From the NCBI GenBank assembly GCA_029953675.1, contig JAMWBK010000011.1, positions 1,364,001-1,428,000 of the forward strand: a stretch of DNA of 64,000 nucleotides, written 5' to 3'. A program made the translations under genes and the position numbers. The notes below the pieces were generated by a model. It saw only the letters and a list, made by a program, of their open reading frames with translations. It was not told the origin of the DNA and searched no databases. Each line of letters begins with the position of its first letter. The first letter of the stretch is position 1. The stretch is from Rhodosorus marinus CCMP1338 (taxonomy: Eukaryota; Plantae; Rhodophyta). Below, one piece after another: positions 4,975 to 63,569 of the stretch.

Positions 4975-6532
4975 GGGTCTAAGGGGGAGAAGCACGATTA
5001 CCTCCCCGGGTACGGCTGCGAGGTCGCAGCCGATGGATTTGCAGTCTTATGTCGTGAAGGAGGGCGGAGACTGGGCATTTGGCGTACGCGTTTATGAAGT
5101 TGGCTCCGGCGTTGGATTTCTCTGGAAAGAGGCTTGCTTTCCCTCCGTGGCAGAATTCCACCTGTCGCCCTACCTCGCGGCGAGCTCTTAGTGGCTGGGA
5201 CCATCCTGGACTTCATCTTTACGAGCCTTGCGAGTAACCTTCGGGACACCGTCATGTACGAATTTTTGGGGGTCATGCCGCGCCTGATTCTGGCCCCAAC
5301 TCACACGCCGGAGCGCAGATGGCGTGTCCAAGATCGGCTTGCCATGTTCCTGAAAGGGGAATGCGAGGTGTTGCAGCAAAGCTACTTGGCGTCGTTGGAA
5401 CCATCCGTTCGTCGGACCCGGGCTGGAACCGTCTCGCCCCTGACGGCTCGAGTACAGAAACGCCGTGCCGGACGAGAATCGATCCCGTTTTTGCTCCTGG
5501 CGTGAACTGCTATGGGGACGAACTGAGGCGATTGAGGACTCACCCGTTGACGGAGTTCTTGCCGATGAGGGAGAAGCTAGCCCCGGGTCACCTGTTGCAG
5601 ATTACTCAGGTCTGAGCCGATTGTGGAGCTCCCGCACTGAAGTGATTCAACATAGCCCTACCTGGGGCCAACACAGTGCCGCTCACGCAATCTTGCTCAA
5701 CTCTCCCATCACACCGCCTACCACCGCCGCTCGCCTTCGCGGCATGGGAGGCCATCTCTCGCACCTGTGCTTAACCACTCTGCCTTCGTCGCCGGGTCAC
5801 CGTCTCGATGCCTTCCAGTTCCGCTCCGCCGCACGGATCTACTTGGGTTTGCCACAAGCGCCGTGGCACTCTAATCGGCCGTCTTTCTGTCAGGGATGAG
5901 AGAGCCGGATTGACGCTAGTGGCTACCACTTCTTGGGTTCATGCGGACTGTTGCGAGGTCTCCGCACGAGCCGCAACACTCGTCTCAAGTACATCCTAAG
6001 CGAATGTTTAACTCGGGTAGGGCATACGGTTGAGGTGGAATCGGAACTACCCAGATCGGTCGCGGACACGGCGCCGCCCCACTGTATCGCAGATCTTCTT
6101 GTATCAGACCCTGCCGCCCGACGCTCAGCATATGTTGACCTTGCGATTACATGCCCTGTGGCGAGCGCCCACCTCACGGCTCCCGCCCGCCGCCGAGGGG
6201 CAGCCGCTTCGACTCTTCGACGAGTGAAGGAACGATGGTATGCTGAGAGCATGGCCAGTCTGCCATACGCCGAGGGTCGCTCCCACCGGTTCCAGCCTTT
6301 CATTGTAGAAAGCTTTGGTCATGTGGATAAGTCGGGTTTTAGAGTGGTTGCGGAAATGTTTTGCTGAGCATCCTACTGAGTACTTGGCGCTTTTACGGCC
6401 GTTGAGTGCCGCCCTGTGGCGATATTCTAGCAGCATGCTTGGCGAGGCGCGACATCGTCGCCTGGATTTGCACGCTTTCCTCCCTAGTTCTTAGTTCATT
6501 TTCACGCCTTGCCTAGCGCATCAGGCTATGCT
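4975..6532 (+). mobile_element. Family C element with a large internal deletion (pre-RT region joined to Zn knuckle/RLE)
   Basis: 5134-5505 resembles the pre-RT segment of D (MPRLIL..RLAMFL vs FPRLVL..KLQMFL). 5465-6494 is the C-family RLE end (IADLLV, YVDLAITCP, PFIVESFG). Confidence 0.85.
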
Positions 6533-14639: not shown

Positions 14640-17600
14640 TAGGCGCTCGCGCAGAGGACCTTCCAGCTTTGGCGATTGCGGCCCATTTTGGGCGCCTTTC
14701 CCGGGTTCAGCAGAACCTACTAGATCGGCTCCCAATCAGCGGTTTTCTGTATTCTGCTCTTAAGGATTTTCTTGCCTCACAGACTTCGCTTTTGGAGACT
14801 CATCCTGTTTTTCTTCTTCAGGTGTTTCCCATGGGGCGTCTCTCTGAAGGCACGTTTCCTCTCATGGATGTGGAGGAGCCTCCTGCCATGGATAGTGCTG
14901 GCGGGGATCCGGTGGATCCGCTCGCTATCGAGCCGAGCACCCCCGAGGCCTCGGGTGTTCGGCGTCGCGTTGCCGGCTCTTTGGCGGCTGCTTATGCGTC
15001 CCTCTAATCTCTGCGTCTCCCTCCGCCCAAGCGTCCTCTTTTTGAGGCCAGGGGCGGGGGACAATTCTTCTCCTTCCCACCCTGATTGGCATCCCAATGA
15101 CGCTTCCTCCGGAGTGAGGGAGCAGGATATCCGAGTTCCTCCGGGATCCTTGCGAGCTCCCTGCTTTTTTCACTCTTCCGGGTAGTTTTGAGGACTGGCG
15201 TTCTACCCTTTTCCCCTGGTTTGCGGGGTTCGTAGCCCGTTTCCCTTTGGGGATATTCCTCTCTGCTCTCACTCCCGCCCACACTCTCACCCTCATTGCT
15301 TGCGTAGGCGGGTGTCTTTTCTTCTAGATTTTTTGCTGCTGGAAGTGGCTGACCATCATCAGGAGCCATTAGGTTGGAAACTAATGTTCATTTTCCCTCG
15401 TCTCGTCCTTACGGTCTCAAAAGGGCGTAACACATGCCCTATTCGCGGCAAAGTTCAAGCTTTTCTAGCTTGAAAGGAAGCAGTGGGGCAGAGGGATATG
15501 CGACGGGTTCGTCAATCCTTCAGCATGGCGCGTCAGTCGAACCTTATCGGACTGACCTGGCTGACGCAGTCACCGCGTTGTTTCCTGTGCACGACGTGAG
15601 TTGGAACGCTGGGTTCCAGACCCCTTCGCCGCCGCTCCGCAGGACACGGGTCGGGTGTTCGTCCGGTTTGATGAGGTTCAGGCTCTTATCGGGTCCGCTC
15701 CGCGACACTGTGCACCGGGTCCCTCTGGATTTCGCGTCGAACTCTTTCAGTGGTTGGGTGAGGACGGCTTGGACGCTCTGGCTCGAGTGCTTGAGGGCCT
15801 TGTCAATGGGGATGACCTTTGTGCGGATGCTTGGACGTAAGTGTCCCGCTCCCAGCTTGCACTGCTGCCCAAGCCTGGCCATATACGCCAGACACCTTCC
15901 TTGCGCCCAATCGGGATGCGTGAGGCGCTGCAGATGCTCGCGAGTCGTTTCCTCTCGCGCCGGTTCACTCTGGAAGCACGGAGTTTTTTTGGGCTGACGC
16001 AGGTCGGCGTCGGGTATTCCGGGGGTTTTGAATTGGTTTCTCGCGTACTTCAATTGGATGGTCCGCGCGATGAACCTTTCGGTACGCTCTCGGTCGATTT
16101 CACCAATGCTTTCAACAGCGGCTCTCGGGTTCATGCGCTGGAGGTTGTTCGTCAGTTGTTCCCGACAAGGTTCGGTTTCCTGCGGCGCGTCTACGGTGAG
16201 GGTCCAAATGGCCCCCGCCTTGACACCTTGGGCGTGGACACTCACACTTTCACAGCCCATACTGGGGTTCAGCAGGGGGACCCTCTCGGGCCTTTCCTCC
16301 GCGCCTGCGGATTACAGTTTGTGTTGTTGCGGCTCAAACACCAGTTCCCCAGGATCCGTGTCGTTGCCTTTCATGATGACGTGACGCTCCTCGGCACTCC
16401 GGATGATCTGGTGCCGGCTTACGATTTCCTCGGGGAGATGGCCACTTCGGTGGGCCTGTCGATATACCACGCGAAATGTGACTTCTGGGGTGACTCTCTG
16501 CGCACCGCTGCAGAAGTGCCCTCAAGATTTTTGGATATCTGGCGCCCAGAGGGTTTCATCCATTTTGTTGTCCCGGTAGGCACGCTGAGCGTTATCGAGC
16601 GCACCCTTGGCGAGCGAATGAGGGAACATGAGTCGCTGCTGGCCGAGTTGTGTCGGCTCCCTGAAGGGTTTTTGAAGACGGCGATGCCCATCTTCTGTTT
16701 CAGTGCGTGCCAGCGTTTGAACTATTTCCTCCGGCAGTTGCCTTCTCATTGGGGGGCATGGCTGGCCCTTCGAGAAGATCAGCGTGCGCGGGAAGTGTTG
16801 GGCTCCTTGCTGGACACGGATTTCTCTACACTTGAAGGCACCGACACGGACACCCTCCACCGACAGCTCGCTTTACGCGTCCGGCTGGGCGGGCTGGCCG
16901 TGGGGTCTTTTGCGCCCATCCAACCGGCGGCACTGGTGAGTTCATGGGCCAACTCGCTCATTACGTGGTCTCCCGAGGGCGATTCGAATGTGCGAGGTTT
17001 GCTCTGCGGCCTTCGTGAGGGGCGATTGGATCAACTTCTGAGCTCGCGGCTTGGTGGCCTGTTCGAGGAGTTGGAGAAAGCGCTGCAAGCGTGTATTACC
17101 GTACCCACTACTACACTGCCCCGCTATGGTTCTTGGCGGGCAGTTCTGGATTCCTTTCACGCCCAGGTCCCGGCGGCCGAGGCGGGTGGCGGACGGATCG
17201 CGCAGGATGTTGAGGCAGCCGGAGCTGTCGCTGATGTAAATGTTGATGCGGATGATGCTGAAACGGATGATGTGACCGTGCCTTCACGGCCGCCAGAGGA
17301 CTCTGTTTCTGAGTTGGGCCGGGTCCCATCGAGGAACGATGTAATTCAAAAGGCCCTATCATGGGACATACATCGCAACTCTCATGCCTACCTCCTGAGT
17401 TCACCGTCCCCTTCGGCCTCTACTTTGGCAAGCCTCCGCGGTTTGGGAGGTAGCCTGAGCTCGCATTTTTTTATGGTCATCCCTGCATATCCGCGGTTGG
17501 TGCTGGCGGATTTTGAGTTGCGGGTGGCCTTCCGCTTGTACCTGGAGTTACAACAACCCCCTTGGCCGTTTGGGCCAGATTCGATGTGCACTCTTTGCGG

Positions 17601-18235
17601 CGCTTCTGTGACCGTAGGTGATTCCGGTTTACACTTGTTGGCGTCTTGTGCGGAGGTCCAGAGAGCCCGAACCCGACGTCACACGCGGATAAATCGTTTG
17701 CTCTTTCGCTACCTTTGGTCGCAGGTACTCGGCACGGCCCGGGAGGTCGAGTATGAAGTTCCTTTACCAGTGGCAGCGGCAATTGAGGGCGAACCTGGTG
17801 GTGGACGCGGCAATGTGGTGCAGCGAGTTGCAGATCTTGTGGTGTCTGACCTGAATGCTCGTCAAAGCGAGTACATCGACCTTTCGATCCCATGCCCCAA
17901 AGCTTCCAGGTACTTGCCAGCGTCCGCCCAGCGTCAAGGAGCAGCCACTCGGTCGGTGCGGTTGTTGAAGGAGTCCCAGTACGCTGCGGGGATGCCGGAA
18001 CCCGCCCTACGCGACTCTGCGCTGTCGTATCGGTTTGTCCCCCTCACCATCGAATCCTTCGGCTTGGTTGACAGTGTGGGTTCTCGTTGGTTGCGTGGTA
18101 TTTTTGATCGTGACTCAGAGAGGTCTTGATAGCCTCCTCACGGAGCTGTTTTTGGCTCTTTGGCGTTGCAACGTTGCTTTGTTATCGGATGCACGTCATC
18201 AGCGTCTTGTTTCCCGTTTCTCAGGGTAGTTAGAT
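14640..18235 (+). mobile_element. Family D2 CRE-like element, 5'-truncated within ORF1; RT + Zn knuckle + RLE, with stops/frameshifts
   Basis: 15841-18129: RPIGMRE, SVDFTNAFN, QQGDPLGP, AFHDD, GGL, CTLC..HLLASC, RTRRH, VADLVV, YIDLSIPCP, PLTIESFG. 14669-15007 resembles D ORF1 (LKDFLASQTSLLETHP vs LEAFLSTEATLLEAHP). Confidence 0.92.
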
Positions 18236-22710: not shown

Positions 22711-23760
22711 CTGGAGCGCCCGTAGGCCGGTTTTGGGAGTCTTGGTGGATGATTTTCGAAACGAATTCAACAGCGTCTCGTGGACGCATGCGTTGGAGGT
22801 GATCCGACGGGTTTTTCCGGAAGCGTGGCCCATCCCTCTCTGGTCTTTACCGAAGGGGGAGCATCTCCTACTGCACCAGGGAGGGCACTGTTTTCCAAGC
22901 ACGTACTCGAGTCCAACAAGGCGATCCTTGTGGGCCTCTACTTCATACTGGTGCCTTGCAGCTCGTTCTCCTGCGTCTCGCGACTGAGGTGCCGGCTCTT
23001 CGTATCTACGCCTATCACGACGACGCGACCTTGCTGGGCGCCCCTGAAACCCTGGCTCGGGGTTCGACCCAGGTCAAAACGATTGCACGTCGAGTAGGTC
23101 TGACGGTGGAATCAGAAAAGTGTCGTTTTCTCGCTCCAAAGTGAAGCTTCGATGGCTTCTCTGCCATCTAATCTACGAATCATTGACGAACGTGAAGGGT
23201 CGGAGCACCACGGCGTCGGTTTCGGGAGCAACAACTTCGTCCAAGCCCCTTGCGAACGAGTTTTGACACGGCACAAGCAGCTCACTGACGCCATTGAGCG
23301 CCTTCTAGAATGCATGCTGCAATTGGCCTGCTTGCTTTCCCGCTTTTGTGCCGGTTCCCGACTCAACTACTGCTTGCGTAGCCTACCACCCGACTGCAGT
23401 TCGTGGATCGCCGCGAAGGCCGACGAGATGGCGCTGCACCACTGGGGCACGCTCTTGGATGAACCCCTCGATCTTGAAGCTGCTCCCGACAGGGACTTAG
23501 TTCGTGCCCAGCTTGCTCTACTGTTGCGGTTAGGGGGATTTGGCGTCGCCGACCGTTGGCTCGTCTGCTCTCCTGCGGCGGGCGCGTCCTGGGCAACCGC
23601 GCTCCGTACCTTGGTGAATTTTCGGATACCAAGTGCCTGCCTTTTGGCTCGAGCACAGACTAGCGAGGACCCAGTGACCCTTCCGCCCCAGCTTTTGACG
23701 ATCCATGATGGCCTACAACAGGCGTTCGGCCTAGCGCTTCAGGCTATTCTAGTAAACCCC
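22711..23760 (+). mobile_element. Family C RT fragment joined to a family C 3' terminus
   Basis: DFRNEFN, QQGDPCG (frameshifted), AYHDD, GGFG. LTIHDGLQQAF matches TINDGLQHAF at 53629; then AGCGCTTCAGGCTATTCTAGTAAA. Confidence 0.82.
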
Positions 23761-24080
23761 AGGCGCACGGGCAATGTCTCTCAAATGAGGTTCTACCGAT
23801 GAGCGACTATTGCTGGTTGAATATTATTCCGGCTGGCCCTCGGCGGCGGGCTATAGCAGTGAGGTGGGCGCTGGCCACAGGGCATGTAATCGCGAGGTCA
23901 ACCTATGCATAATCTATCTGGCCTTTACAAATCTATCTGGACTTACTCTATCTAGCGTGGTACCTAGTTTCTAATTCCCTGCTCGCGGGTTTTGCGTAGC
24001 TTTAAGGCGATGGTTTCTAGTTTGATTTATATTCAATGCACAACTTACAATGCAATGAAACAATCTTAGCCAAAAGTCCT

Positions 24081-27000
24081 TCAACACCTGGATCGGTTAA
24101 CTGCGACGATTTCGATATTGTCCGGACAGGTCTCAGAGATGGCGACAGCGACTGCCTCGGATAAGCCCTGAATCCGCCTAGAGGAAATGCTCAATACCCC
24201 GAGAACCTCGTTTGAGCTGATGACGACGCCATCTGCTTGCTCCCATGAAACTCCCTTCGGCTTTTGAGGCCATTCCCAGGATACCTCAAGGATCTTCGGC
24301 AGGTTCACAGCAGCATCCTTCGACGAGAAAGTGATCATACAGGCGCTAGCCGTCTCACCGGAGAGTCTCGTCACGGATGCAACCTTCTCTACTGATACCC
24401 TGTAAGAACTGCAACCCGCTTTCGGCTCGCGGGCCACGGTTTCCGGCAGAAGTAGCTCGGTCGATGTTTCAGCCGGAGCCGTTGTCGGGGACGTCGTAGG
24501 AGTCCCAGTATAAGTCGGTGTCGGCGTGGGTGTCTGAGTCGGAGTCGCTGTCGGTGTCGGGGTTGGAGTGGGAGTCGGGGTCTCATCCGAATCGAAAGAG
24601 TTGCACATGATTGGAATTGTCGAGTTGAGGGCGTCGGCAAAGCTCGACCTCACGTAGCTTCCGGTGAAGTAGAGTCGAATGTTGGTAATGCCCTTGATGT
24701 CCTGGAGCCTGGCATCGATCTGATAGTTGCTGAATGGGCTTATGTCGATGAATTTCTCCGTCGAGAAGACGGCATTTTGTCGGATGTAGTTGGATGCCAT
24801 CCACTCCTTGATTTCCAGCTCGTCACAAGCAGGTGCACCCCCAAAGTACATAAACGTTCGCTTTCGGTTGGCGTGCGTATACTTCTTCACGTAGTACATC
24901 GAGTCCTCATCATCTTCCGCCTCTGCAACTCGAGCGACTCCGGACATGCTCTTGTGCGTGATGTCGACGACTGGACTCGTCTCATCCGACACGCCGTCAA
25001 AAACGACAAACATGCTGTTCATCGAGATCATGGGGAAGAAGAGCGGATCGTCCAGTCCCGGGAGATTGTTGAAAGCCGGATGCGATGGGTCAATGCAAAA
25101 ATTGATCGACCCCGTCTCCAGAAACTCCGCCCAGTTATCTTCTCCTACTGTATCCGCTTTGATATTGTAAGGGCCCCAAAAGGTGCCATACTCCATCAGT
25201 TGGCCTTGCGTGTAGGTGGTCTCGTACCAACTCTTGAGCGACTTGCGAAGTTGAATGATCGCGTCAGACGCACAGCTGAAGTATAGGCTCCCTGATGTGT
25301 CCAGAAGGGAAGTTTCCCACTCGCAGTTCGCGAGGCTAACGGTGTCTACCGACGACATCGAGCCCATCATGAGATAGTTCCTCGCGGTGAAGACGGCCTC
25401 CAGATCTCGGTGAAAATCGGCTATCAGAAGGTTGTAGTTGGTCTGGTGAGCGGTCTTAACAGCCGGTGCAGCGGGATTTATCATGTTGTTCTTCATCTCG
25501 ACCGCCAGTACAGCCACGACGTTCTGGAGGTAGAGCTTTGTCGCGGTGACCTGCTTGAGGTAGCTCATATAGGATGAGTAAAGCGCGATGAGGTCGTTCT
25601 TTTGGTTGACCCACATCTCCAACCCATCGAATGCCCGAAGAAATCCAGTCGCCGAGGTGTAGCACTCGGTTTTCATGTACCCCACGTAGTCTTGGAGCTC
25701 TTTTCTGTCAAGCGCCACCATCCCGTTACTAATCGAGGTTTGAACATCGTTAACTTGAGCAGCTAGCGCGACGGCTTCGTCATAGTCGTCCGCACTGTAG
25801 ACGCTCTCCAGCGGATCCGCGAGCGTCTCTGTACCCTCCGTAAGAAATCCAATATCGGCCATGATAGCGTCGTAGCTCACTTCATAGTTTGACCAGTCGG
25901 CGCTTTCTCCCGGCGAAGGGAAAAAGCCTATCAATTCGTTCGTCAGCGAGGGTATCGTAGCAAACTTGGGGTTACTGCTCAAGGTCTCAATGCCGGCGAA
26001 AACCGCCTTCGTTGTATCACCGAGCGACTTACTGTCGGTAAAACTGCCGACTTTGGACATTGCCTTGGTCACTGCGAATGCCGCGTCGAAGACGTTCGCA
26101 AAGAAACTCACAAACTGCATCACCTTGTTGAACTTGGCACGCTTTTCGACCTTACGCCAGCACTCGTCCATTTTAGCTTGCTGCGACTCCATCGTGCTCT
26201 GGTACTTCCAAATGTTCTGATCAGTCACGGACATCGACCGGTTCACCTCCATGATCTCCTCCATCAGCGCCAGCTGCTTGGCCAGCTGCGAGTCGATACC
26301 CGTCTGCGCGTTGCTCGTCGCGTTGGAGAGGAGCTCCATGGAAGCTTCCGAATCCTCAACGCTGCTTCGGTAGGCGTCGTAGTAGTACTCCATGGATTCT
26401 CCGAGCTGGCGCTGTGTTTCAAGGTAGTCGAGCAGGTACTCAAAGCTCATGACGCTGAGCTGGTTGGCATTCGTACCGGAGGAGGTGGTCAACGGATTCG
26501 CACCCTTGATAATAGAAATCGCCTTGCCTGCTAGCGAGGTGTACTTGGCTTTCTCCGTCTCGTCTGAAGTCTGATTGGCCACTAGCTGAGCATTGTAGAG
26601 CATATCGGAAACTGACAGGAGAATCATGGTGTACGCGTTTTGGTTTTCTTCGGAGTCATCGTTGAAGAACATCATATCCAGCATCCTCTTCGAGAGGCTG
26701 AGACCGTAGTCGATGTACGCCAACGGCTGAGGAAAGTTTTCGTGGGCAAAGGACCGCGGATCGTCGTAGTCATTGGTGTCCCACTCCTCCACTTCAGCGC
26801 CGATTGTTGCTCGGAATAACATCGGTAGCGGATCGTGAGGCTTCTTTCCCTTCCACCCAGAGTTGTTTGATATTCCCTTGTTGCCGTGAAGTGGATAACC
26901 TGACAATGAAACTGTTTCGTAGTAGTTTACGTTCAGAAATGGGCCCTTCTGCCATGTTCGCGTGTAGCAGTTCGTCGTGAGCTGGCCCCCTATTCCGGGC

Positions 27001-28011
27001 TCTCCTGGCTTCCCGCCAGGCCCTCCTCTGCCGGGATTAGATTCACCATTGAAAGAAATCAGCTGCTTCTTCATTGCTAAGGGCCCCATCTGCTTCTCCT
27101 CCGACAACAACGCTCGAGTAAATCTGTACGGTTCCTGCATGTCCACCAGGTCCACCTCTTCCTCCTTGTCCCGCCTGACCACCCGACATCGGATAACCGG
27201 GCTGATAGTACACACATTTCTTCTTGGGTCCGTTCTTGGTACCTGTAGGACACTCCTTACACCAAGAATCTTTGCATTTCCCAGCCACCCAGTTTTTCTT
27301 CTTGCCGCACTCGACTCCATCGATCGGCTTCTGTGCATTACCTCCGTCTCCACCATATCCACCGGTACTACCGTCGCTCCCATCAGTTCTTATGGTCATG
27401 GTATATCCTCCCTCGATTAGGCCCTCGATGTTCATGTACTTGGCGACCATGATGAAGCTTCCCCCCTGGTTGCCCGGACTGCCAATGGCTCCCGTACCTC
27501 CCGGTTTACCCTTTTTACCATGGCGATTCACGTTGACATCCTTCGTTCTCACCACAGGATCGGGGGTCTTCGGCGTGTCTGGCGCGATCGGTGGAGGTAC
27601 CGTGACCTCCGTTGCCTTCAGGTTGATCTCAAAATCTCCATCGCTCTGAATCTCAATGATATTCGCGACAATCGTCACGTTCGTACCCCGCATCTCAGCA
27701 GCCACCCCTGCCGCGCCCTTGATCAGAACGTAGTACGCGTATACTATGATATCCTGCTCAGTTCCAAACAACTTTGTCGTGCCCGTGCTATTCGACGTGA
27801 AGTCCATCGTGTAGAAGAACGGTGCATAGATTGCAAACGTTCCGCTCTCATCACCGTCCACGTATCCAGAACTCACATCCTGAGCCATCAAACACGTGGT
27901 ATTGGAGAATCCCCATCCATCACACACGCTCACGTCATCAGCACTCACTCCTCCGAAGCAGAGGAGCATCGCGAAGGTCATAGACCCAACCACCGCAAAC
28001 GTTCGCTTCAT
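24081..28011 (-). CDS. Large secreted protein (~1300 aa): Gly-rich/collagen-like N-terminus, long helical region, putative TcA-like C-terminal domain, PT linker; one frame break near 27050
   Basis: ORF 27043-28011 (signal peptide MKRTFAVVGSMTFAMLLCFGGVSA, GXX runs) overlaps ORF 24081-27383 in another frame, and the Gly-rich pattern continues across the junction. Functional label is inference. Confidence 0.75.
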
Positions 28012-37471: not shown

Positions 37472-39125
37472 GGACTTTACTGGACTTTACTAGCATAGCC
37501 TGAAGCGCTACGCAAGGCGTGAAGATGAACTAATAACTAGGGAGGGAAGCATGCAACCCCAGGCGCCGATGGCGCGCCTCGGAACGCATGTCGCTGGAAT
37601 ATCGCCAAAGGGAGACACTTAAACGCCTCACGAGCGCCAAATATTCAGTAGGATGCTCAGCAAAACATTTCCGCAACCACTATAAACCCGACTTATCCAC
37701 GTGACCAAAGCTTTCCACAATGAATGGCTGGAACCGGTGAGAGCGACCCTCAGCGCAAGGCAGACTGGCCATGCTCTCAGCATAATGTCGTTCCTTAACT
37801 CTTCGAAGGGCTGAAGTCGCGGCCCCCCGGCGGCGGGAGGCTGCGGTGAGGTGGGCGCTGGCCACGGGGCAGGTAATCGCAAGGTCCACATATGTTGAGC
37901 GTCTGGCAGCAGCGTCGGAGACGAGGAGATCGGCTATACAACGGGGCGGTGCAGAATCCGAGATTAATCTGGGCACTTCCGACTCAACCTCAACCGTATG
38001 CCCTATCCGAGTCAAAAATTCGCTGAGGATGTACTTGAGGCGAGTGTGACGCCTCGTACGGAGACCTCTCAACAGTCCGCAGGAACCCAGGAAGTGGTAG
38101 CCACAAGCGTCAATCCGGCTCTCACATCCCTGACAGAAAGACGGCCGATTAGAGTGCCACGGAGCCTGTGGCAAATCGAGATAGATCCGTGCGGCAGAAC
38201 GGAACTGGAAAGCATCGAGACGATGAATTAATGACGAAGGTAGAGTGGTTAACCACAAGTGCGAGAGGTGGCCTCCCATGCCGCGGAGACGAGCGGCAGG
38301 GGTAGGCGGCGTGAGAGGAGAATTGAGCATGACTGTGTGAGCGGCACTGTGTTGGCCCCAGGTGAGGCTATGTTGAATCACATCAGTGCGGGAGCTCCAC
38401 AATCGGCTCAAATCCGGGCAGTCTGCAACAGGTGACCCGGGGCTAGCTCTCCGTCATCGGCAAGAACTCGGTCGAGGGGAGAATCCTCAATCGCTTCAGC
38501 TCGTCCCCGTAACAGCTGAAGGGCATGTACTCGCGAGGTCAACATATGCGGAGCGTCTGGCGGCAGCATCGGAGACGAGGAGATATAACCACATGCATCG
38601 ATCCGACCCTCAAATCCCTGACAGAAAGACGGCCGATTAGAGTGCCACGGAGCTTGTGACGATCCCAGATAAATCCGTGCGGCGGAACGAAACTGGAAGG
38701 CATCCAGACGGTGACCCAGTGATGACGGCAGGGTCGTTAACCACAAATGTGATAGATGGCCTCCCATGCCGCGGAGGCGAGCGGCGGTGGTACGCGGTGT
38801 GAGGGGAGAGTTGAGCAAGATTGCGTGAACGGCACTGTGTTGGCCCCAGGTGAGGCTATGTTGAATCACATCAGTGCGCGAGCTCCACAATCGGCTCAGA
38901 CCCGGGTAATCGGCAACCGGTGCCCCGGGGCTGGCTTCCCCCTCGTCGGCGAGTACTCTGTCGATGGGAGAGTCCTCGATTGCCTCTGTTTGTCCCCATG
39001 ACAGCTCCTTCCAGCAGAGAAATCTAGGATCGGCTCTCGTCCGGCACTGCGTTGCACTTACTGAACGCCTGTTGCAGAGCATCATAGACACTCAAAAGCG
39101 ATGGCGGAAGGGTCACGGGCTCCTC
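37472..39125 (-). mobile_element. Two tandem family C 3' fragments
   Basis: ORFs 37680-38411 and 38408-39091 match 52553-53629; tail ACTGGACTTTACTGGACTTTACTAGC on the plus strand at ~37470-37495. Confidence 0.9.
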
Positions 39126-45343: not shown

Positions 45344-47980
45344 ATGTTCTGGAAGTTGGTGATATTCTGTCTGGGATTATTCGGTGTTATTAGCATCACC
45401 TCGGCTCAGGTTCAGTATGGACATCAGTCATGCAACAAGGATCTTCTTAAGGATGACTGGAAACCCAAGAGGTATGAGCGATTCTCGGAAATTTTGGCTA
45501 AGACGCCGCATGGGAAGCCGGTTAAGATACCATGTGGAGTGGCGGTGATTGTAGATACTAAAGATATCCCCAAAGTTAATGGAATTGAGGTTCTCGGGCT
45601 TCTGTATGTACCTCCGAACGTTGGTAAGCTTGTGGTTAGAACTCAGTACGTGCTTGTGACGGGGTACCTGAGGGTCGGAGATGAGCGAGGGATGCGAAAG
45701 GGTAGCAGGGTTGATTTCGTTCTGGACAACTTTGACTACAAGCTGAAGGATGTCATCGTGAATTCTGAGGAACTGGAGATCGTAGGTGGGAAGAACGAGG
45801 TTGTAGGTAGTGACGGGAGACTTGGACGACTGTCGTTTGCTGTGATAGGGGGACAGATTGAGATTCATGGGCTTGCTAGAAAAGATACTAGATCTGTACA
45901 CAACCTCCTACATCGGAGGGCGGAGAAGGGAGATGAAGAGATTACTGTGGAGGAGCCGTGCGAATGGCCGATCGGGTCGAGAATTCTGATTGCTACGACG
46001 AGCTACCGTAAGCGGGAAACGGAGGAACGGGTGATCAAGGGGACAAGCACCAATTCTAAAGGTATGGCGGTGCTGAAGCTGAACAGACCGCTCAAGTACA
46101 AGCACCTCGCTACCGAGGATTCGTACGAAGATGTGAAGGGCTACAAGGTGGAAATGCCCGCGGAAGTTGTGCTATTGACTCGGCCTGTGAGGATCAGCAG
46201 GCGTAAGACGAGCAAGCAGTCAAGCAAGTTCGGACCGCACTTGATGGTAGCGAACACACAACTCAAGCAGGTGATCCACGGCGTGGAGTTTGTCGAGATG
46301 GGTCAGCTGGGGACGCTCGGGAGATATCCGATTCACTTCCACCTGTGCGGAAAAACGGATTGGTCTGAAGTCTATGGATGCAGTATATTGCGAAGCAATC
46401 AGCGCGGCATAGTAATCCACGGAACCGACAAGGTAAAAATCTTCGACAACGTTCTGTACGACGGGGCCGGACACCAGATCATGATGGAGGACGGAATCGA
46501 GGAACAGGGAAAGTACTACCGCAATGTTGTGGTCAACTGCGACGCCATCCGAAGACGTGACCTGCTTCCTGACTCTAGTGATGATCAAGTGTCTGGAATC
46601 TGGATATCCAACCCGAGAAACGAGTTCAAGGGGAACAGGGTAGTCGGAAGTGAAGTTGCTGGCATCTTTACTGAGCTGAGGGCCGTCACAGGACCATCCA
46701 AGGAACTCCCACGTGCGAAGAATTTTGATCCTAGGTTCGAGCTCCTCGATCTCTTCGTGGACAACGTCGTCCACACCAACGGGGAGTTCGGGCTATGGTT
46801 CAACGGCTGGACACCGCCTAAGAGGGTCTCTGTGGGGCGCATAAACTCATACAGAAACCTGGTCCACGGGGTGCTAATGGAATTGAGTTCGAGCTTGGAA
46901 CTCCACGACAGTGTGCTCGTAGACAACGGAGGAGGGATCGACTTGGATCGAATGCACAACTCGAGGGTGAGCGACTCTCTTATCGTTGGGAAAAGCAAAA
47001 TGCCCGGGGCGAATTGTCCAAAGGCTCACTCGGTCGAGTTTAAGAATAGAATGTTTGAGAGGGAGAGCCGATCAGCATACCTCGCTAATGTGACATTTGA
47101 TGGCTTCAAGGACTGCAAGTCTACGGGTGTTGTAGGTGTACAAGGAGACGATCCTGCCGTCCAGTTCAACGGTTGGAGTACGAGCACCGGGCTGCGCAAC
47201 TGTCATTTTCTGGATATTGGACCTGATCAAGGCTTTGGTCTAAGGAACGCCGAAAAATCGGACTTTCAGTGGTCCGAGTTTGTGGCTATTCCCGCTAGAG
47301 ACACAACGTGGGGGAAGAAAACGATACCCAATGGTTTTGCCATCGCTGACACACCGTTTATGGTCCCCGACCCAAAGAGGAAGAAGTGCGTGGCGATCAG
47401 GGAGTTTGGAAAGTTCTGTTCGGGCGTTTGCTTCAGAACGGTGAACGTTCAGCTGACAGTGGATAGTATCTTCGACCTTAGCTATCAACTTGAGGTGATC
47501 AAGGTGGACGGAAAACTTAGGTCCGAAGTAGTAGTAAGTCCGTTTAAGAGTATCCTGGCCCCCACCAAGTTGCAGTACTTCTTCACGGTGGAAACCGCTG
47601 TTAAGTACGCTGTTAAACTGAGGAAGCAAGACAACAGGCCCTTTCCCACGCGGATGTTTGTGGACGTAGGAGATCAGGACCTCAGATGCACGCGGGGAGA
47701 CATTCTGCTCGACTTTGAGATGGATGGGTTCTCACTTGGCAGAGCGAGAAAGGAAAAGCAACCAGCCAAACGCTACTGGACTGGGTGCCGAAAAAAACAC
47801 ACGCCAAGCACTAGTGTGTACTACCAAGACAAGTGCAAGGGGGGCAAGATGTTCAGGAGGGTTACTATCCCTCACAAGGCCTTGCCCTACAATCGCCAAC
47901 AGGTGCTTGCCTCGAGCGGTCTCGAGTTCAACATTAACGAGGGTTCACCAAAATGTAAAACCGACAAGACCTGCGACTAG
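45344..47980 (+). CDS. Secreted G8-domain / pectin-lyase-like beta-helix protein (CEMIP/TMEM2/fibrocystin-L-like), 878 aa, intronless
   Basis: Signal peptide; G8-like beta strands with conserved Gly (IEVLGLLYV, VLVTGYLRVG, AVIGGQIEIHG); VVLLTRPVRI; GRYPIHFH hallmark; IVIHGT, GIWISNPRNEFKGNRVVGS. Confidence 0.88.
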   Translation: MFWKLVIFCLGLFGVISITSAQVQYGHQSCNKDLLKDDWKPKRYERFSEILAKTPHGKPVKIPCGVAVIVDTKDIPKVNGIEVLGLLYVPPNVGKLVVRTQYVLVTGYLRVGDERGMRKGSRVDFVLDNFDYKLKDVIVNSEELEIVGGKNEVVGSDGRLGRLSFAVIGGQIEIHGLARKDTRSVHNLLHRRAEKGDEEITVEEPCEWPIGSRILIATTSYRKRETEERVIKGTSTNSKGMAVLKLNRPLKYKHLATEDSYEDVKGYKVEMPAEVVLLTRPVRISRRKTSKQSSKFGPHLMVANTQLKQVIHGVEFVEMGQLGTLGRYPIHFHLCGKTDWSEVYGCSILRSNQRGIVIHGTDKVKIFDNVLYDGAGHQIMMEDGIEEQGKYYRNVVVNCDAIRRRDLLPDSSDDQVSGIWISNPRNEFKGNRVVGSEVAGIFTELRAVTGPSKELPRAKNFDPRFELLDLFVDNVVHTNGEFGLWFNGWTPPKRVSVGRINSYRNLVHGVLMELSSSLELHDSVLVDNGGGIDLDRMHNSRVSDSLIVGKSKMPGANCPKAHSVEFKNRMFERESRSAYLANVTFDGFKDCKSTGVVGVQGDDPAVQFNGWSTSTGLRNCHFLDIGPDQGFGLRNAEKSDFQWSEFVAIPARDTTWGKKTIPNGFAIADTPFMVPDPKRKKCVAIREFGKFCSGVCFRTVNVQLTVDSIFDLSYQLEVIKVDGKLRSEVVVSPFKSILAPTKLQYFFTVETAVKYAVKLRKQDNRPFPTRMFVDVGDQDLRCTRGDILLDFEMDGFSLGRARKEKQPAKRYWTGCRKKHTPSTSVYYQDKCKGGKMFRRVTIPHKALPYNRQQVLASSGLEFNINEGSPKCKTDKTCD

Positions 47981-52502: not shown

Positions 52503-53722
52503 TTGGACTTTACTAGCATAGGCTGAAGCGCTACGCAAGGCGTGAAGATGAACTAATAACTAGGGAGGGAAGCATGCAACCCCAGGCGCCGATGGCGCGC
52601 CTCGGAAAGCATGTCGCTGGAATATCGCCAAAGGGAGACACTTAAACGCCTCAAGAGCGCCAAATATTCAGTAGGATGCTCAGCAAAACATTTCCGCAAC
52701 CACTCTAAACCCGACTTATCGACGTGACCAAAGCTTTCCACAATGAATGGCTGGAACCGGTGAGAACGACCCTCAGCGCAAGGCAGACTGGCCATGCTCT
52801 CAGCATACCGTCGTTCCTTAACTCTTCGAAGGGCTGAAGCCGCGGCGCCCCGGCGGCGGGCGGCTACGGTGAGGTGGGCGCTGGCCACGGGGCAGGTAAT
52901 CGCAAGGTCCACATATGTTGAGCGTCTGGCAGCAGCGTCGGAGACGAGGAGATCGGCTATACAACGGGGCGGTGCAGAGTCCGAGATTGATCTGGGCAGT
53001 TCCGACTCAACCTCAACCGTATGCCCTATCCGAGTCAAAAATTCGCTGGGGATGTACTTGAGGCGAGTGTGACGCCTCGTTCGGAGACCTCTCAACATTC
53101 CGCAAGAACCCAGGAAGTGGTAGCCACAAGCGTCAATCCAGCTCTCACATCCCTGACAGAAAGACGGCCGATTAGAGTGCCACGGAGCCTGTGGCAAACC
53201 GAGATAGATCCGTGCGGCAGAACGGAACTGGAAAGCATCGAGACGATGACTCAATGACGACGGTAGAGTGGTTAACCACAAGTGCGAGAGGTGGCCTCCC
53301 ATGCCGCGGAGACGAGCGGCAGTGGTAGGCGGCGTGAGAGGAGAATTGAGCATGACTGTGTGAGCGGCACTGTGTTGGCCCCAGGTGAGGCTATGTTGAA
53401 TCACATCAGTGCGGGAGCTCCACAATCGGCTCAAACCCGGGTAGTCTGCAACAGGTGACCCGGGGCTAGCCTCTACGTCATCGGCAAGAACTCGGTCGAG
53501 GGGAGAATCCTCAATCGCTTCAGCTCGTCTCCATAACAGCTCCCTCGAGGAACGAAAACGGGACCGATTTGCGTCCGGCACGGCGTTGCACCTCCTGAAC
53601 GCGTGTTGAAGACCATCATTAATTGTCAAAAGCGGGGGCGGCAGGTGGCGATCCCGCCTTTACTGGACTCTACTAGCATAGCCTGAAGCGCTACGCAAGG
53701 CGTGAAGATGAACTAATAACTG
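52503..53722 (-). mobile_element. Family C 5'-truncated copy (ORF 52553-53629) plus a second terminus at 53652-53722
   Basis: CQGC..HFLGSC, RTRRH, IADLLV, YVDLAITCP, PFIVESFG, LHASLPSY*. Confidence 0.92.
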
Positions 53723-54529: not shown

Positions 54530-57500
54530 GCCGGCTCTGGATGTATAGATACAGTTTTTGGTTTCGTGAGGGTGTATGGTGCTGGCTTTTGGTAGTTTTG
54601 AGTCGCAATTGTGTTCTTCGGTGGGAGGCGCTTCTTTCTGCAGCCTTTCCCCCGCATCTTCTAGTGGTGTGGTGCGTGCTGGGGGTTGCTAGCGCCCCTT
54701 GGAGGTCGTGGTGGTTTTTGTTTGGTTGCAAACGTTGGGAACAAGTTCTCTTTTTGGGGGTTTCGTGGGGGAATCGGTTTTTCACACCTTCCAATCGTTA
54801 TGGTTGGGGTTTCCCCACCCATTCCGGCGGACGGAGCCGTTCTCTCAGCGCGCGTGGAGCTCTGCGTGGGCGGGTTTAGTACCGCGGCCACCCTCACGGA
54901 CTGCGCTGACGAGTTAGCCCATGGGATCTGCTCGAAACTGACGAGTCTTCTTGTGACTGCTTCCCAGGAACACCGCCTGCCCCTGCTGATCGCCTATTTG
55001 GAGCGCTTCTCCGCCTCCGCGCCTGCCCCATACCCCCGGTGCCCGTCCCCGCGGATCCGCACGGTACAGCGGGGCCTGCCTCCACCCGACCCGAGCGCTC
55101 CGCTCCGGTCATTCCTGATTCCGACTGGCCTACCCCTATTCAAGGACAGACGCCTCCTGGGCCCGCGTCGGGCCCGAATCCTGCTCCCTCCAGTGCCCCA
55201 CGTGCGACCTATTCGCAGGTCCTACGCAGGGGCTCTTCTGAACAACGCACGACGGCAATGGTGCGTATGATGCCACAACACATCCCTATTGACTCTTCTC
55301 GCCAACTATCTCCGTTCCACTTTGTTTGGATGACGAACGTGCGTCCCCAGACCCCCTCTCGTGGTCGGGGCCGCGCGCCCGTCCACTACCGCGATTTTCG
55401 CGACACCATGGCTTCCTCCTTGGGGTCGCCCCGTCTGAATTCCTATATGTGGACTTCACGGGCCCTCATGCCTGTTTTCTTGTTACTGACTCGGCTTACC
55501 AGTTCCTTCAATCCCTTGTAACCACCCCCGCGCCCCAGCGCTCTGCTCTGGCCAACATGATACTGACTCGTCCTCATGTCTCTTTGTTTGTCGAGTTCGA
55601 TCGTTTTGACGCCGGCTGGGTTCCTCCGTCGCCCTTGCAAAACCTGGATGCCTCGCAGGCTTCGGTTGTCGCGCTACACACTCATGCGGCGCGGCTCTCG
55701 CGCATACAGGCGAGCCTCTTCGCGCGTTTTCCTCCTCGCGGGGTCCTCCGCACCGCGCTAGAGGCCTTCCTCTCCACTGAGGCCACCCTGCTGGAAGCCC
55801 ACCCTGCGTTTGACCTTCTGCCGCCGACTCTTGAGCACCCTTCCTCCCCTCGCCCTGCCTCCGAGGCTCGTGACACCGACATGGCAGAAGCACCATCGGC
55901 CTCTCCGAATCCGCTGGCTCTGGACACCCTCAGTCAAGACTCCGCTGCTGAAAACCCTGTGTCTACTTTCTTCAGGTCTTTTAGTTCCTTCGTGCGCCCT
56001 CCACGTAAGCGTCGTGCGGCTCCTGAGCCTCCCTCCGAGGCACCTCCTCCGGATATTCGATCTGCCTTCCCGACTGAGGGGAGGCCCGATGTCTGAGTCT
56101 TCCTCCTCCGCGTGCGTGTCGTCCCGGTTACCCCTGTTTACCAGTGACCGCTCAGCCTGGCATGAGCGTGTTCTCTCGTGGTTTTCGCACCTTGTCGCCT
56201 CCTACCCGGACGGTTCCTTCCCCTTTGTCGTCAGAGCACGGCCGTACGGCTCCCTCGTCGACTTCATAAGCCCCTAGGATTGGTGTTGGATTTTCTCTGG
56301 CAGCAGGTCGCCGCGAACCCTCACTGCTCTCTTCGCTGGGAACTCTTGTTCTTTTTTCCCCGCCTCGTGCTCACCTCCTCTACCGTCCCCCTCAACCCAC
56401 ATCCTCGCCGGGTCCACCCTCGCCGAAAACTGCAAATGTTCCTTTCCGGCGACTTTGAGGACCTCGAACGTCTTTATTTCGCTTCTCTCTCTTCCTTTTC
56501 TCCTAGTGCTCCCTCAGCTTTTAGGTCTTCTCGACAGAATCGGGCGCGTCACGCGGTGGCAGGCGGTGATCTGCGGCGGGCAGCCGGGATCCTCCAGCAG
56601 CGGCAACCTGTGGTTCCATACTCCGATGATCTTTCTTCACCGCTCCGTTTGCTCTTTCCCTCGGAAGGCTCCCCTTGGGACTCCTCGTTTGAATCAGTGT
56701 TGGAAGAGTACCGCGCCGCGCCACATCCCAGTGCGCGGTTAGTGGTCAATCTGGAGGCGGTGCGTGAGTTGGTTCATGATGCTCCGAAGGGCCGTTCCCC
56801 AGGGCCCTCGGGGCTGCGGGTGGAATATCTCCGTTTCTTAAGTGATGAAGGTTTGAAGGCGTTGGCGTGGGTGGTCGAAGCGCTTGTGAATGGTGATCCC
56901 CTGTGTGAGTGTGCGTGGTTCTTGGTCGGGCGTTTTCAGTTGTGTCTGCTTTCGAAGCCCGGCCACACGGCCTCGAGCCCTGCTATTCGCCCTATTGGCC
57001 TGGTTGAGGTGGTCCGCAAATTGGCGGCGCGATGGTTAGTGAAAATCTTGGTTCCCGAATCCCGCCGTTTCTTTGGGCACGTGCAGTTAGGCGTGGGCTA
57101 TCGTGGTGGCTGTGAGTTGTTGTCTGTTTTACTCCGTTCGGAAATGGCGTACTCCCCAGATTCTGGGCTCCTCTCTGTAGATTTTACCAATGCGTTCAAC
57201 CGCGTCTCTCGTCCGGCTCTCATGCCCGTGGTGCGCGAAGTCTTCCCTGTAGGCTTTCCCTTTGTTAGTAGACTTTATTCTCCGCTTGGTCGTGGGGCTA
57301 CCTATGACACCCTTGGCGCTTCCTCACACACGTTTGCGGCGCGCACAGGGGTACAACAGGGTGATCCCTTGTCCCCTTTCCTACATGCCTGTGGACTACA
57401 ACTCGTCTTGCTTTGTCTTCGCTCCGAATTCCCGCAGGTTCGTACGGTTGCATACCACGACGACGTGTGCCTCCTGGGGCCCCCTGATACTCTAGCACTC

Positions 57501-59292
57501 GCTTATGATCGTCTCCGCTCCTTGGCTTCGCGGGTTGACCTGGAGGTTAATCATCACAAATCGTTCTACTGGGGAGGTGTAGCTGCACAAGAGCAGCAGG
57601 TACCTGCGTCGTTCCAGGATATTTGGAGACCGGATGGTTTTGTCCACTTAGGCATCCCCTACGGGTCGCCGTCCTTCGTTGAAGGCGAGTTGCTGCAGCT
57701 CCTCGGTAAGCACAGACAGCTGGTTGCAGAGCTTCGACGGCTACCTCCGGGCTTTCTCCAGTGCTCGTTGTTGCTGTTTCGGTATTGTTGCAGTCAGCGG
57801 TTAACCTATTGGCTTCGCTCACTTCCAACTCATTGGGGCCGGTGGTTGGCCACTCGTGCGGATGCTGAAAGTTTCCGTGACCTGGGATATTTTCTCGATG
57901 AAGAGCTGAGCGCTCTGCCGCGACCCACCTGTGATGTTGTGCGCGCCCAGGTAGGCCTCCCATTGCGATTGGGGGGACTGGGCCTCTGCAATCGTGTTGT
58001 GGTCCAACCTGCAGCCGCAGTAGGGGCCTGGGGAACCGCACTTCCCACTTTGAGCAGCTTGGGTATCTCGAAGTTCCGCAATTTGATGGCGAGCCTCTCG
58101 CGGGGTGTCTTGCTTCCCAGCGTACCGGAAAGCGCCCAAGACTTGTTTCTGGAGCTCCAAACCGCCCTGAATTCCTGTACTAGTCTCCCCGAAACCGTTC
58201 AACCCCGTCTTCCTGACTGGCGAGCTGTATTTGACCGCTCTCGAGGCTCCGCCCCGGGGATTCGTCCTGCGCCTGAACCTGTTCTAGGGGAGATTGACCC
58301 AGTGGTTGCCGCAGAAGAAGAAGTTCCAGTTGATCCTCCTGATGGTTCCCAGCGCGCTGGGAGCCGAGCTCAAGCACGCACGGATGCGCTGCAAAATATC
58401 CTTTCTTGGGACTTGCACCGTGCTGCATATGGCCGACTCCTCGCGCAGATGGTCTCATCTTCTCGCGCTCGCGCCCGCCTACGTAGTCTTGGAGGGGTTA
58501 TTAGCTCTCAGTGGCTCATGACCGTACCAGCCTTTCCGCCACTCACACTGTCGGATTTCGAAGTGCGTACTTCACTGCGCTTATACCTCGGCTTACATCA
58601 GCCCCCTTGGCCGTACGAGATGGGTTCGTCGTGCCCTCTGCTGCTCTCAGACTGAAGACAACGCAGATTTTGGCGCCCACCTGCTCGCTAGTTGCCCGGC
58701 GGTGAAAGGTGCTCGAACCCGCCGCCACACACGGATCTTGAACCTGTTATACCGGGAACTTCGGCCTATAGTCCGGCAAGCCGGTCTGGAAATCGAACGT
58801 GAGAAACCTTTACCCGTCGCGGACTTTCAAAATGATGAACGCCGTGTAGCCGACCTGGTGATCACCTGTGACGACAGCCGCCGTACCACATACGTTGATC
58901 TTGCTGTTCCTAACCCTCAAGCTAGTCGTTATCTCCCGGCTGCGGGGGAGCGCCGTGGATCTGCCGCCGCCAGCATGAGACGCCGCAAAGAGATCAAATA
59001 CGCGGGGGCTTTGTCTTCCCCTGGTGTTCGTGCTTCGGCACTAGCACATCGCTTGGTACCCCTGATCATTGAGTGCTTTGGGTTCATGGACTCTGTTGGT
59101 TCTCGCTGGCTTCGGGAGTTGTTCCGCGAACGCCCTGACCGTCTTCAATCGTTGTTTACCCGCTTAAGTTTCCTGCTGTGGCGCATGAATGCCGCTTTGA
59201 TGTTGGAGGCGCGAGTACTTCGCCGCGCTTAGTCTTTTTTTCCCCTCGGGGTTTTTTTTTTCAGCCTCCGATTAAACCATTCGTTCGTTCGA
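54530..59292 (+). mobile_element. Apparently full-length family D CRE-like element (~4.8 kb): ORF1 (~54690-56096) and ORF2 (ATG 56089 to 59232), with several frameshifts/stops
   Basis: SPGPSGLR, RPIGLVEVVRK, SVDFTNAFN, QQGDPLSP, AYHDD, GGLG, HLLASC, RTRRH, VADLVI, YVDLAVPNP, PLIIECFG; tail CATTCGTTCGTTCGATT. 5' end supported by the homologue at 39440-39935. No TSD found. Confidence 0.92.
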
Positions 59293-63530: not shown

Positions 63531-63569
63531 CACTTAACCTCAAGAGTCAATGGCCAAGACTAATCATCA

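Follow-up and report, generated by a model that had tools for sequence, protein, structure and literature searches.

The window analysed here is a stretch of 64,000 nucleotides of nuclear DNA from the red alga Rhodosorus marinus. A gene of the window matches R. marinus contig JAMWBK010000011.1 exactly. The window contains a gene that belongs to a small, lineage-restricted family made up of four R. marinus copies and one distant relative in the jakobid Andalucia godoyi. The gene, its parts in order of translation, and the adjacent repeat are as follows.

24081–28011, minus strand: complete orphan-family gene, from its first base through the stop (ORF list and collinearity with paralog P0152)
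27940–28011, minus strand: signal-peptide-like N-terminus of about 24 residues (hydropathy 1.85 at residues 4–22)
27607–27864, minus strand: N-terminal beta-rich domain (AlphaFold strands, pLDDT 73–83)
26946–27597, minus strand: Pro-rich spacer, four glycine-every-third-residue motifs and a Cys-rich insert (motif positions)
25209–26822, minus strand: predicted alpha-helical region of about 540 residues (DSSP of a low-confidence AlphaFold model)
26058–26123, minus strand: conserved 22-residue apolar segment, closing the first of the long predicted helices (hydropathy peak)
24633–25205, minus strand: conserved beta domain of about 190 residues (family alignment A5; strands in part at pLDDT 55–73)
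24420–24632, minus strand: Pro/Thr-rich linker, longer than that of the paralogs (tandem repeat at 24513–24582)
24084–24419, minus strand: putative beta-sandwich domain at the C-terminus, about 110 residues long and containing 4 Cys (strands at pLDDT 54–66)
22718–23908, strand not given: dispersed repeat directly 3' of the gene (blastn, 78–88% identity to L004:9945–12381)

An earlier note on this DNA had read the span as a single giant protein. The strings of protein sequence that it quoted are all present in the minus-strand translation where it had placed them, yet the present assembly of this copy does not encode a giant protein continuously, because the coding sequence is divided between two overlapping minus-strand ORFs in different frames, 27043–28011 (322 codons) and 24081–27383 (1100 codons). 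Neither piece has an in-frame stop inside it, and a single frame change separates them, so that the copy as assembled would encode at most a 322-residue exported N-terminal fragment. Taken jointly, the pieces are collinear with the intact, expressed 1264-residue paralog P0152, and a Rhodosorus protein of 1220 residues matches the region with E=3e-179, far above chance by sequence comparison. An exact look-up returned no annotated product identical to either ORF. An intron was considered as the cause of the frame change and rejected: none is shared by the family, since three paralogs and a transcript are intronless and run uninterrupted through the equivalent region.

The window copy is either decaying or mis-assembled. 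A residual assembly error, which would mean that the alga truly has an intact fourth gene of about 1300 codons, is possible though somewhat doubtful. NextDenovo assembled the genome from Nanopore reads, with Pilon for polishing (PMC10250338), and apart from the frame change the two pieces lack stops and remain collinear with the intact paralogs. In addition, comparison of the window copy with another strain's transcript gives a non-neutral dN/dS of 0.38, and the codon composition of the copy resembles that of its expressed neighbours, with native GC3. On the other hand, three rounds of short-read polishing should clear most single-base errors in a unique gene, the other three copies came through the same assembly intact, and the locus lies approximately 50 kb from the contig end in transposon-rich DNA. 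The related transcript of the other strain also carries an in-frame stop of its own (n=1), and two independent disruptions in the lineage of this gene suggest decay. As for the surroundings, a related copy of the 3' repeat lies 3' of the paralog on contig 12, where it overlaps the reverse-transcriptase ORF of that locus (L004). Repeats are common to the family loci; however, their order and orientation vary from locus to locus, and a fixed unit of gene plus retroelement was rejected.

The three intact R. marinus paralogs are intronless genes of 1263–1270 codons (L002:8001–11792, L003:7596–11408, and L004:4593–8399), which GenBank records as fragment models only (KAJ8904482.1, KAJ8905592.1, and KAJ8901027.1). 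They share the architecture of the window copy from end to end, including the signal-peptide-like start, and differ from it in being uninterrupted and in having a shorter Pro/Thr linker. Identity is 61–74% among the three paralogs and 34–38% between them and the window copy. One paralog is expressed, a full-length transcript of the family is known in another strain, and dN/dS of an intact paralog is 0.21, which indicates purifying selection.

The only relative found outside Rhodosorus is ANDGO_06449 of Andalucia godoyi (P0004), a 2055-residue protein whose source label is "Twitchin". The match has E=3e-17 over the helical and beta parts and about 6e-6 over the head. Its modules are arranged as in the algal proteins, from beta/Gly-rich head through helical region to beta domain, and invariant Gly, Cys, and FCIDP columns are common to both; identity in the helical part is 15–20%. 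The difference lies at the C-terminus, where at least four fibronectin-III stretches, a transmembrane anchor, and a short tail replace the Pro/Thr linker and the beta sandwich. The C-terminal segment is strongly hydrophobic (hydropathy 2.99).

The family is undescribed and carries no annotation anywhere. Searches by phmmer recovered the real relatives, and more than 140 of the 155 matches were noise from the Pro/Thr linker, which is the source of all low-complexity matches, e.g., internalin K and SslE. A word-index search with the 1100-codon ORF gave nothing, its candidates being swamped by Pro/Thr low-complexity words, and those with the Andalucia core and the N-terminal domain of a paralog gave only self-matches. 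Pfam, NCBIfam, and PDB sequence searches produced no real match for the family. Neither 1.84 billion representative proteins nor the genomes of 185,579 bacterial and archaeal species yielded a bacterial relative, and a tblastn search of plasmids gave no match. When viral, bacterial/archaeal, and metagenome contigs were searched by pattern and tblastn with the beta-domain alignment, no relative emerged, and there were no viral proteins among the phmmer matches. The native codon composition lends no support to recent horizontal transfer. Together with the missing bacterial relative, it leaves horizontal transfer from bacteria unsupported. The earlier note's description of the protein as eukaryotic and secreted is supported.

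Export is indicated by the N-terminus. The hydropathy peak that the earlier note took for a signal peptide follows Lys/Arg in the window copy and recurs as a signal-peptide-like start in all three intact paralogs; an export signal and sequons were noted in the family sequences. The N-terminal beta-rich domain that comes next is 42% identical to the paralogs and 28% to Andalucia, and its model has no significant fold match in the PDB by Foldseek. The non-significant list includes beta-helix adhesin folds and gp37-gp38 adhesin structures. In the module that follows, which spans the overlap of the two ORFs, four glycine-period-3 motifs are parted by short strands, and in the family alignment its Gly and Cys columns do not vary between red alga and jakobid. 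The earlier note called the Gly-rich runs collagen-like: the runs are real, the first lying at 27460–27519, but each of the four has just 4–7 triplets and there is no match to Pfam Collagen.

The helical region is predicted to include two helices of approximately 100 residues each, according to the low-confidence model. Where about 400 residues of heptad-like helix had been described, the prediction extends to about 540, and the heptad pattern is not significant against shuffled sequences (z 0.9–1.35), with no clean 3.5 periodicity; a coiled-coil reading is unsupported. The apolar segment noted earlier is present; all paralogs have an apolar peak at the corresponding position, and Andalucia has one nearby (1.53). 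The hydropathy of the segment is only 1.2–1.6 and it contains charged residues. In the beta domain, 66 columns are invariant among the four copies, and identity to Andalucia is 26%. It contains the FCIDP motif at 25086–25100 and the SPFSNYQI...YFTGSY stretch at 24654–24740. The broader motif W..F...G...FC[IL]DP shows a weak alignment (E=0.12) to the Cys motif of 6fx6, a TIE thioester domain from S. aureus; a thioester (TIE/TED) domain was rejected, as the paralogs and Andalucia have no invariant Gln downstream of it.

The PT-repeat linker and Cys-containing end domain described earlier are likewise present. The linker is partly encoded by a 6/12/30-nt tandem repeat, and the C-terminal domain is 75% identical to the transcript of another strain. 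Modelled at pLDDT 54–66, this domain gives Foldseek matches to chitin-binding or carbohydrate-binding modules (2rtt, 8oye, and 3ndy; probability 1.0, approximately 105 columns), with target TM of 0.58 for 2rtt, 0.47 for 3ndy, and 0.13 for 8oye; no match to such modules was found at the sequence level.

The earlier note had proposed, from motif resemblance, a likeness to the A subunits of Tc toxins (TcA). In TcA, a pore-forming domain with antiparallel channel helices and hydrophobic tip loops is followed by a TcB-binding domain (PMC11435725, PMC6795518). The predicted layout of the family protein fits this published one, with two antiparallel helices of about 100 residues, an apolar turn, and a beta domain, as far as a low-confidence model of the helical and beta parts can tell (mean pLDDT 40.6, pTM 0.27). 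With the same model at pLDDT 40.6, all 22 of the 22 best Foldseek matches against the PDB were TcA subunits (YenTcA, TcdA1, TcdA4, XptA1/2, and TcaA-TcaB), at E 3e-8 to 8e-5 and probability 0.93–1.0, over approximately 800 columns for most of the 22. Among the 50 best PDB matches, the helical part was matched by TcA only and by no other long helical or fibrous protein. The superposition itself is poor (TM 0.11–0.14, rmsd >50 A, identity 8–12%). Given a pLDDT of 40.6 and such TM values, the matches may reflect merely a general layout of many long helices followed by a beta domain.

Sequence comparison gave no counterpart to these matches. With Pfam thresholds of E<=1 for pieces of the window and E<=10 for seven family members, TcA_TcB_BD, neuraminidase-like, VRP1, and other Tc domains were absent from all seven family sequences, and neither the ABC-toxin N-terminal domain nor TcA_RBD matched the family. 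Searches of PDB sequences by phmmer and with three profiles, among them that of the beta domain (A5), returned no TcA at E<=10. The proposed likeness is thus partly supported, by the Foldseek matches and the predicted layout; the poor superposition and the absence of any Tc sequence domain speak against it. The only structural analogue that the modelling points to is the channel and TcB-binding part of bacterial TcA subunits.

On this basis, we tentatively propose that the family encodes an exported, C-terminally tethered protein whose helical hairpin would behave like an alpha-helical membrane inserter of the TcA type when other cells are touched. Established are the gene family and its collinearity, the conservation, the expression of a paralog, the export signal, and the domain order; tethering, oligomeric membrane insertion, and the biological role are proposed. 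The protein enters the secretory pathway with its parts in the order beta-rich head, four glycine-period-3 motifs with the Cys-rich insert, helical region, beta domain, Pro/Thr spacer, and a carbohydrate-binding-like beta sandwich. The two longest predicted helices would flank the conserved apolar segment. Because Andalucia replaces the last two parts with fibronectin-III repeats and a transmembrane anchor, we infer a C-terminal tether that fixes the protein to the surface of its producer, in the alga to wall polysaccharide and in the jakobid to the membrane. This would leave the conserved head, hairpin, and beta domain pointing outward, and the hairpin would insert into the membranes of other cells, possibly as an oligomer, all this without demonstrable Tc membership and in the absence of a Tc shell, of receptor domains, and of TcB/TcC partners. 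A toxin with a role in defence or competition, as the earlier note suggested, would be a conjectural use for such a protein. Several observations speak against an inserter. Buried helices of soluble bundles share the moderate apolarity and charged residues of the apolar segment, and the extension after the beta domain would occupy the TcB docking site of TcA. Matches of the model in BFVD, which include collagen-repeat, phage tail, and fibre proteins, suit a fibre as well as they suit a channel. Low model confidence, the TM values, and the missing Tc sequence similarity count against it too.

A structural or adhesive protein is a serious alternative, which we hold to be plausible though somewhat short of probable. 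The protein would be a fibre or stalk of the surface or extracellular matrix, with a beta/Gly-rich head, a helical shaft, and C-terminal binding domains; it would not insert into membranes, and the TcA matches would stem from a model rich in helices and badly packed, an artefact for which the low model confidence and TM speak. Stylonematophyceae have thick mucilaginous walls (PMC10250338), a setting that suits such a protein, as do the Pro/Thr spacer with its carbohydrate-binding-like end domain and the fibronectin-III repeats of the Andalucia relative, which are typical of adhesion proteins. The tail-fibre and collagen-repeat proteins in BFVD and the beta-helix adhesin folds listed for the N-terminal model point the same way. 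However, a canonical coiled-coil shaft is unsupported because the heptad pattern is not significant, long helical or fibrous proteins are missing from the 50 best PDB matches except for TcA in the helical part, and the apolar segment is conserved at the predicted hairpin turn.

A bolder form of the inserter proposal seems unlikely to us: free-living protists, here the alga and the jakobid, would have as a native protein a minimal alpha-helical translocation channel of TcA-like type, tethered to the surface and reduced to the hairpin and funnel domain, with a novel glycine-rich head and no shell or cocoon partners. A protein of Mimivirus LCMiAC02 matched in BFVD would be a third, viral branch of the family. 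That protein, A0A481Z1I0, is uncharacterised, has 1032 residues, a size similar to the query, and is the best BFVD match (E=2e-14 over 917 aligned columns). It also invites the idea that the family derives from, or is common to, giant viruses of protists, which would account for its scattered occurrence in alga and jakobid. We regard this as quite improbable, given TM 0.16 and 11% identity with a low-confidence query model, and given that phmmer, pattern, and tblastn searches produced no viral protein or contig. The four algal copies are native in composition and 34–74% identical to one another, and are therefore long resident. Least probable, and largely refuted by the sequence comparisons, is a true Tc-toxin A subunit of bacterial origin working with TcB/TcC partners: the Foldseek matches and the reported precedent of a eukaryotic Tc toxin in the entomopathogenic fungus Metarhizium (PMC13236867) favour it, but no member has a Tc Pfam domain, the PDB sequence matches lack TcA, bacterial relatives are missing, GC3 is native, the protein is half the size of TcA without shell, neuraminidase-like, or receptor-binding domains, and no TcB/TcC-like (RHS/YD cocoon) domain occurs in the large ORFs of the window or the three paralog loci.

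If the likeness to TcA is true, photosynthetic protists and jakobids would each gain their first Tc-channel-like module, one stripped of all sequence hallmarks of bacterial Tc toxins, and it would bear on the origin of syringe-type alpha-pore formers and on how unicellular algae deal with grazers, pathogens, and competitors. Were the minimal-channel form true, the Tc channel module would not be an invention of bacteria alone but a building block that is ancient or was shuttled by viruses. Regardless of TcA, a conserved family of exported proteins of about 1265 residues, with a unique glycine-period-3 module, is common to very distant eukaryotes. Three of its intact genes are present in GenBank merely as fragments, and the window copy provides a within-family case of a decaying or mis-assembled gene.

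Compared with known systems, the family protein may share with TcA subunits (YenA2 of YenTcA, 6ogd_B; TcdA1; TcdA4; XptA1/2; TcaA-TcaB) the antiparallel helices, apolar turn, and beta domain of about 190 residues suggested by the model, and like them it is exported. It differs in lacking detectable sequence similarity and Tc Pfam domains, and at about 1300 residues it is roughly half as long. While the N-terminal part of TcA is an alpha-helical shell with a trefoil knot, a linker, and receptor-binding and neuraminidase-like domains, that of the family is a beta/Gly-rich module; TcA ends at the beta domain, whereas the family protein carries further domains after it, and unlike in Tc systems, TcB/TcC genes are absent near the family copies. 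The Tc complex of Metarhizium brunneum is comparable as a TcA-type gene in a eukaryotic genome. Its A subunit, however, has 2882 residues, was identified through its InterPro domains, namely the TcB-binding, the neuraminidase-like, and the ABC-toxin N-terminal one, and is accompanied by B and C partners (PMC13236867), features that the family does not share. For the glycine module, a collagen triple helix is a poor comparison, as the family runs are too short and too interrupted. It may be compared with polyglycine-II or short collagen-like modules, of the phage gp38 adhesin type and as in bacterial and viral collagen-repeat proteins, in having glycine at every third residue, conserved across lineages, though Foldseek gave no significant structural match.

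The interrupted minus-strand gene at 24081-28011 of the window belongs to a protein family that is without annotation and extremely sparse. It consists of two minus-strand ORFs in different frames, overlapping by 341 bases, with one frame change between them and each stop-free inside. The earlier note had described a single giant protein here, which the present assembly does not encode, while all of the strings that it quoted are present in the two translations. The two pieces were searched, aligned, and folded separately.

Features of the window copy
27043-28011, minus strand, first piece: ORF of 322 codons with an ATG start (ORF listing)
24081-27383, minus strand, second piece: ORF of 1100 codons (ORF listing)
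27460-27519, minus strand, first glycine run (ORF translation)
26058-26123, minus strand, apolar 22-mer (ORF translation)
24654-24740, minus strand, SPFSNYQI...YFTGSY stretch (ORF translation)
24420-24632, minus strand, Pro/Thr linker, with a 6/12/30-nt tandem repeat coding for part of it
24084-24419, minus strand, end domain with Cys (ORF translation)

When the second piece was searched with phmmer against 1.84 billion representative proteins, just five genuine relatives emerged, namely four R. marinus sequences and ANDGO_06449 of the jakobid Andalucia godoyi; the remaining matches reflect Pro/Thr low complexity. Word-index searches from the Andalucia sequence or the N-terminal domain gave no further relatives, nor did tblastn against plasmids. 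Both pieces are collinear with P0152, the complete 1264-residue product of a transcript from another strain of R. marinus, and three paralogs are intact in the genome.

Uninterrupted, intronless paralog ORFs (locus:positions)
L002:8001-11792, 1263 codons
L003:7596-11408, 1270 codons
L004:4593-8399, 1268 codons

GenBank models of these three genes are mere fragments of 328, 657, and 132 residues, the 328-residue one containing a spurious intron and the C-terminal 132-residue one lying beside a separate 500-residue gene call, and a full-length transcript of a different strain backs the long ORFs. Identity among the paralogs is 61-74%, and between them and the window copy 34-38%.

A shared intron as the cause of the frame change is excluded, because the paralogs have none at the equivalent place. 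Among transcripts, the one nearest to the window copy is 1.1 kb long and comes from another strain (L005:2-736); it is 82% identical to window 24074-24841, with dS 0.34 and dN/dS 0.38; for an intact paralog compared between strains, the values are dS 0.19 and dN/dS 0.21. Through most of its history the window lineage was constrained, and it is now either recently decaying or mis-assembled. We slightly favor a real frame change. The assembly was built from Nanopore reads and polished three times with Pilon, so residual error is possible, and an assembly error is a substantial though lesser possibility; however, the L005 transcript has one in-frame stop of its own, and the gene lineage would therefore have been disrupted independently in two strains. 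Some other cause is unlikely.

The encoded protein begins, as the earlier note had proposed, with a signal-peptide-like profile, followed by a beta-rich domain (AlphaFold pLDDT 73-83) and a spacer rich in Pro. Next comes a module of four motifs that repeat glycine at every third position, with short strands between them and a Cys-rich insert; its Gly and Cys columns do not vary between red alga and jakobid. The helical region of the earlier note is also predicted, but spans ~540 rather than ~400 residues and has no significant heptad pattern; in a low-confidence AlphaFold model it includes two helices of ~100 residues each, with a conserved apolar segment at the end of the first. A beta domain of ~190 residues follows (66 invariant columns among four copies; its FCIDP motif is common to Andalucia), then the PT linker and a ~110-residue beta sandwich matching chitin-binding or carbohydrate-binding modules in Foldseek. 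In ANDGO_06449, the same unit of head, helical region, and beta domain instead leads into fibronectin-III repeats and a transmembrane anchor, which suggests that the C-terminus is a tether in both lineages. Of all motifs in the family, W..F...G...FC[IL]DP (window 25086-25130 and the matching columns of the beta-domain alignment A5) is conserved most; it weakly aligns (E=0.12) with the 6fx6 thioester Cys motif, but since no partner Gln is conserved, this likeness is probably chance. 6fx6 is the TIE adhesin domain of S. aureus, and complement-type thioester proteins also occur in the Foldseek list.

The family loci, all four of them, are set among shared dispersed repeats. The assembly, GCA_029953675.1, is of R. 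marinus CCMP1338, a single-celled red alga in the Stylonematophyceae (PMC10250338). By record coordinates, the transposon-rich window covers ~1,364,001-1,428,000 of the 1,442,050-bp contig JAMWBK010000011.1, near its end, which would place the gene ~50 kb from the contig end.

Other features of the window
15841-18129, reverse-transcriptase ORF, the more divergent of two
56178-58655, reverse-transcriptase ORF
54554-59287, retroelement containing the latter ORF, 97-99% identical to copies adjoining paralogs on contigs 5 and 12
45344-47980, plus strand, single-exon gene for a CEMIP-type right-handed beta helix, 878 residues (Pfam E=4e-43)
59478-63533, minus strand, single-exon, full-length ABCB-type transporter (two ABC_membrane and two ABC_tran domains)

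The CEMIP-type protein has a signal-peptide-like start, and is another secreted protein of the same subterminal region; it exactly matches a product recorded for contig JAMWBK010000011.1, which ties the window to that assembly. Besides the retroelement, the window carries several dispersed repeats. A ~1-kb dispersed repeat family (5459-6519, 37505-38517, 52528-53645, and others) occurs in at least five places on both strands, is 84-86% identical to L004:10905-12021, and overlaps long ORFs without a Pfam match.

Our tentative reading is of an exported, C-terminally tethered surface protein, in which the conserved helical hairpin with its apolar tip may act like a TcA-type membrane inserter, outside the Tc family. 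With the second piece as query (a poor AlphaFold model from an alignment of seven sequences, pLDDT 40.6, pTM 0.27), the 22 best Foldseek matches in the PDB are all TcA subunits, from five genera, at E 3e-8 to 8e-5 and with ~800 aligned columns for most. They are followed by jelly-roll capsids, complement-type MG domains, and carbohydrate-binding modules, all matching beta parts. As no other long helical protein is among the best 50, the TcA match is not simply one of helices. On the other hand, no global superposition on TcA exists, given the TM-scores (0.11-0.14) and an rmsd of more than 50 A, and Foldseek itself warns about low-confidence models; a fibre with a purely structural or adhesive role, which would make the Foldseek result an artefact, is nearly as plausible.

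In BFVD, the helical and beta part (again a low-confidence query model) is best matched by A0A481Z1I0 of Mimivirus LCMiAC02, an uncharacterised protein of 1032 residues (E=2e-14, 917 columns), a match stronger than every TcA one; an invertebrate iridescent virus protein is second, and phage tail and fibre proteins come next. Scanning viral, prokaryotic, and metagenome contigs by pattern yielded no further relatives, and the codon composition of the family gene resembles that of neighbouring genes. A giant-virus link of the family is quite improbable.

It is very improbable that the protein is a genuine Tc A subunit of the bacterial type, working with partners: Pfam and NCBIfam gave no families except linker noise, single-sequence and profile queries found no TcA among PDB sequences, and the Tc motif resemblance proposed in the earlier note failed every sequence test. 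Nothing in the analysis shows a toxin or defence role. Returning to the TcA-type inserter, the predicted layout fits published descriptions of TcA, in which the channel helices run antiparallel, bear hydrophobic loops at their tips, and lead to a highly conserved C-terminal TcB-binding domain. While the eukaryotic Tc complex reported for Metarhizium is complete and recognisable by sequence, the R. marinus family, if TcA-like, would be a strongly reduced variant carrying a novel head.
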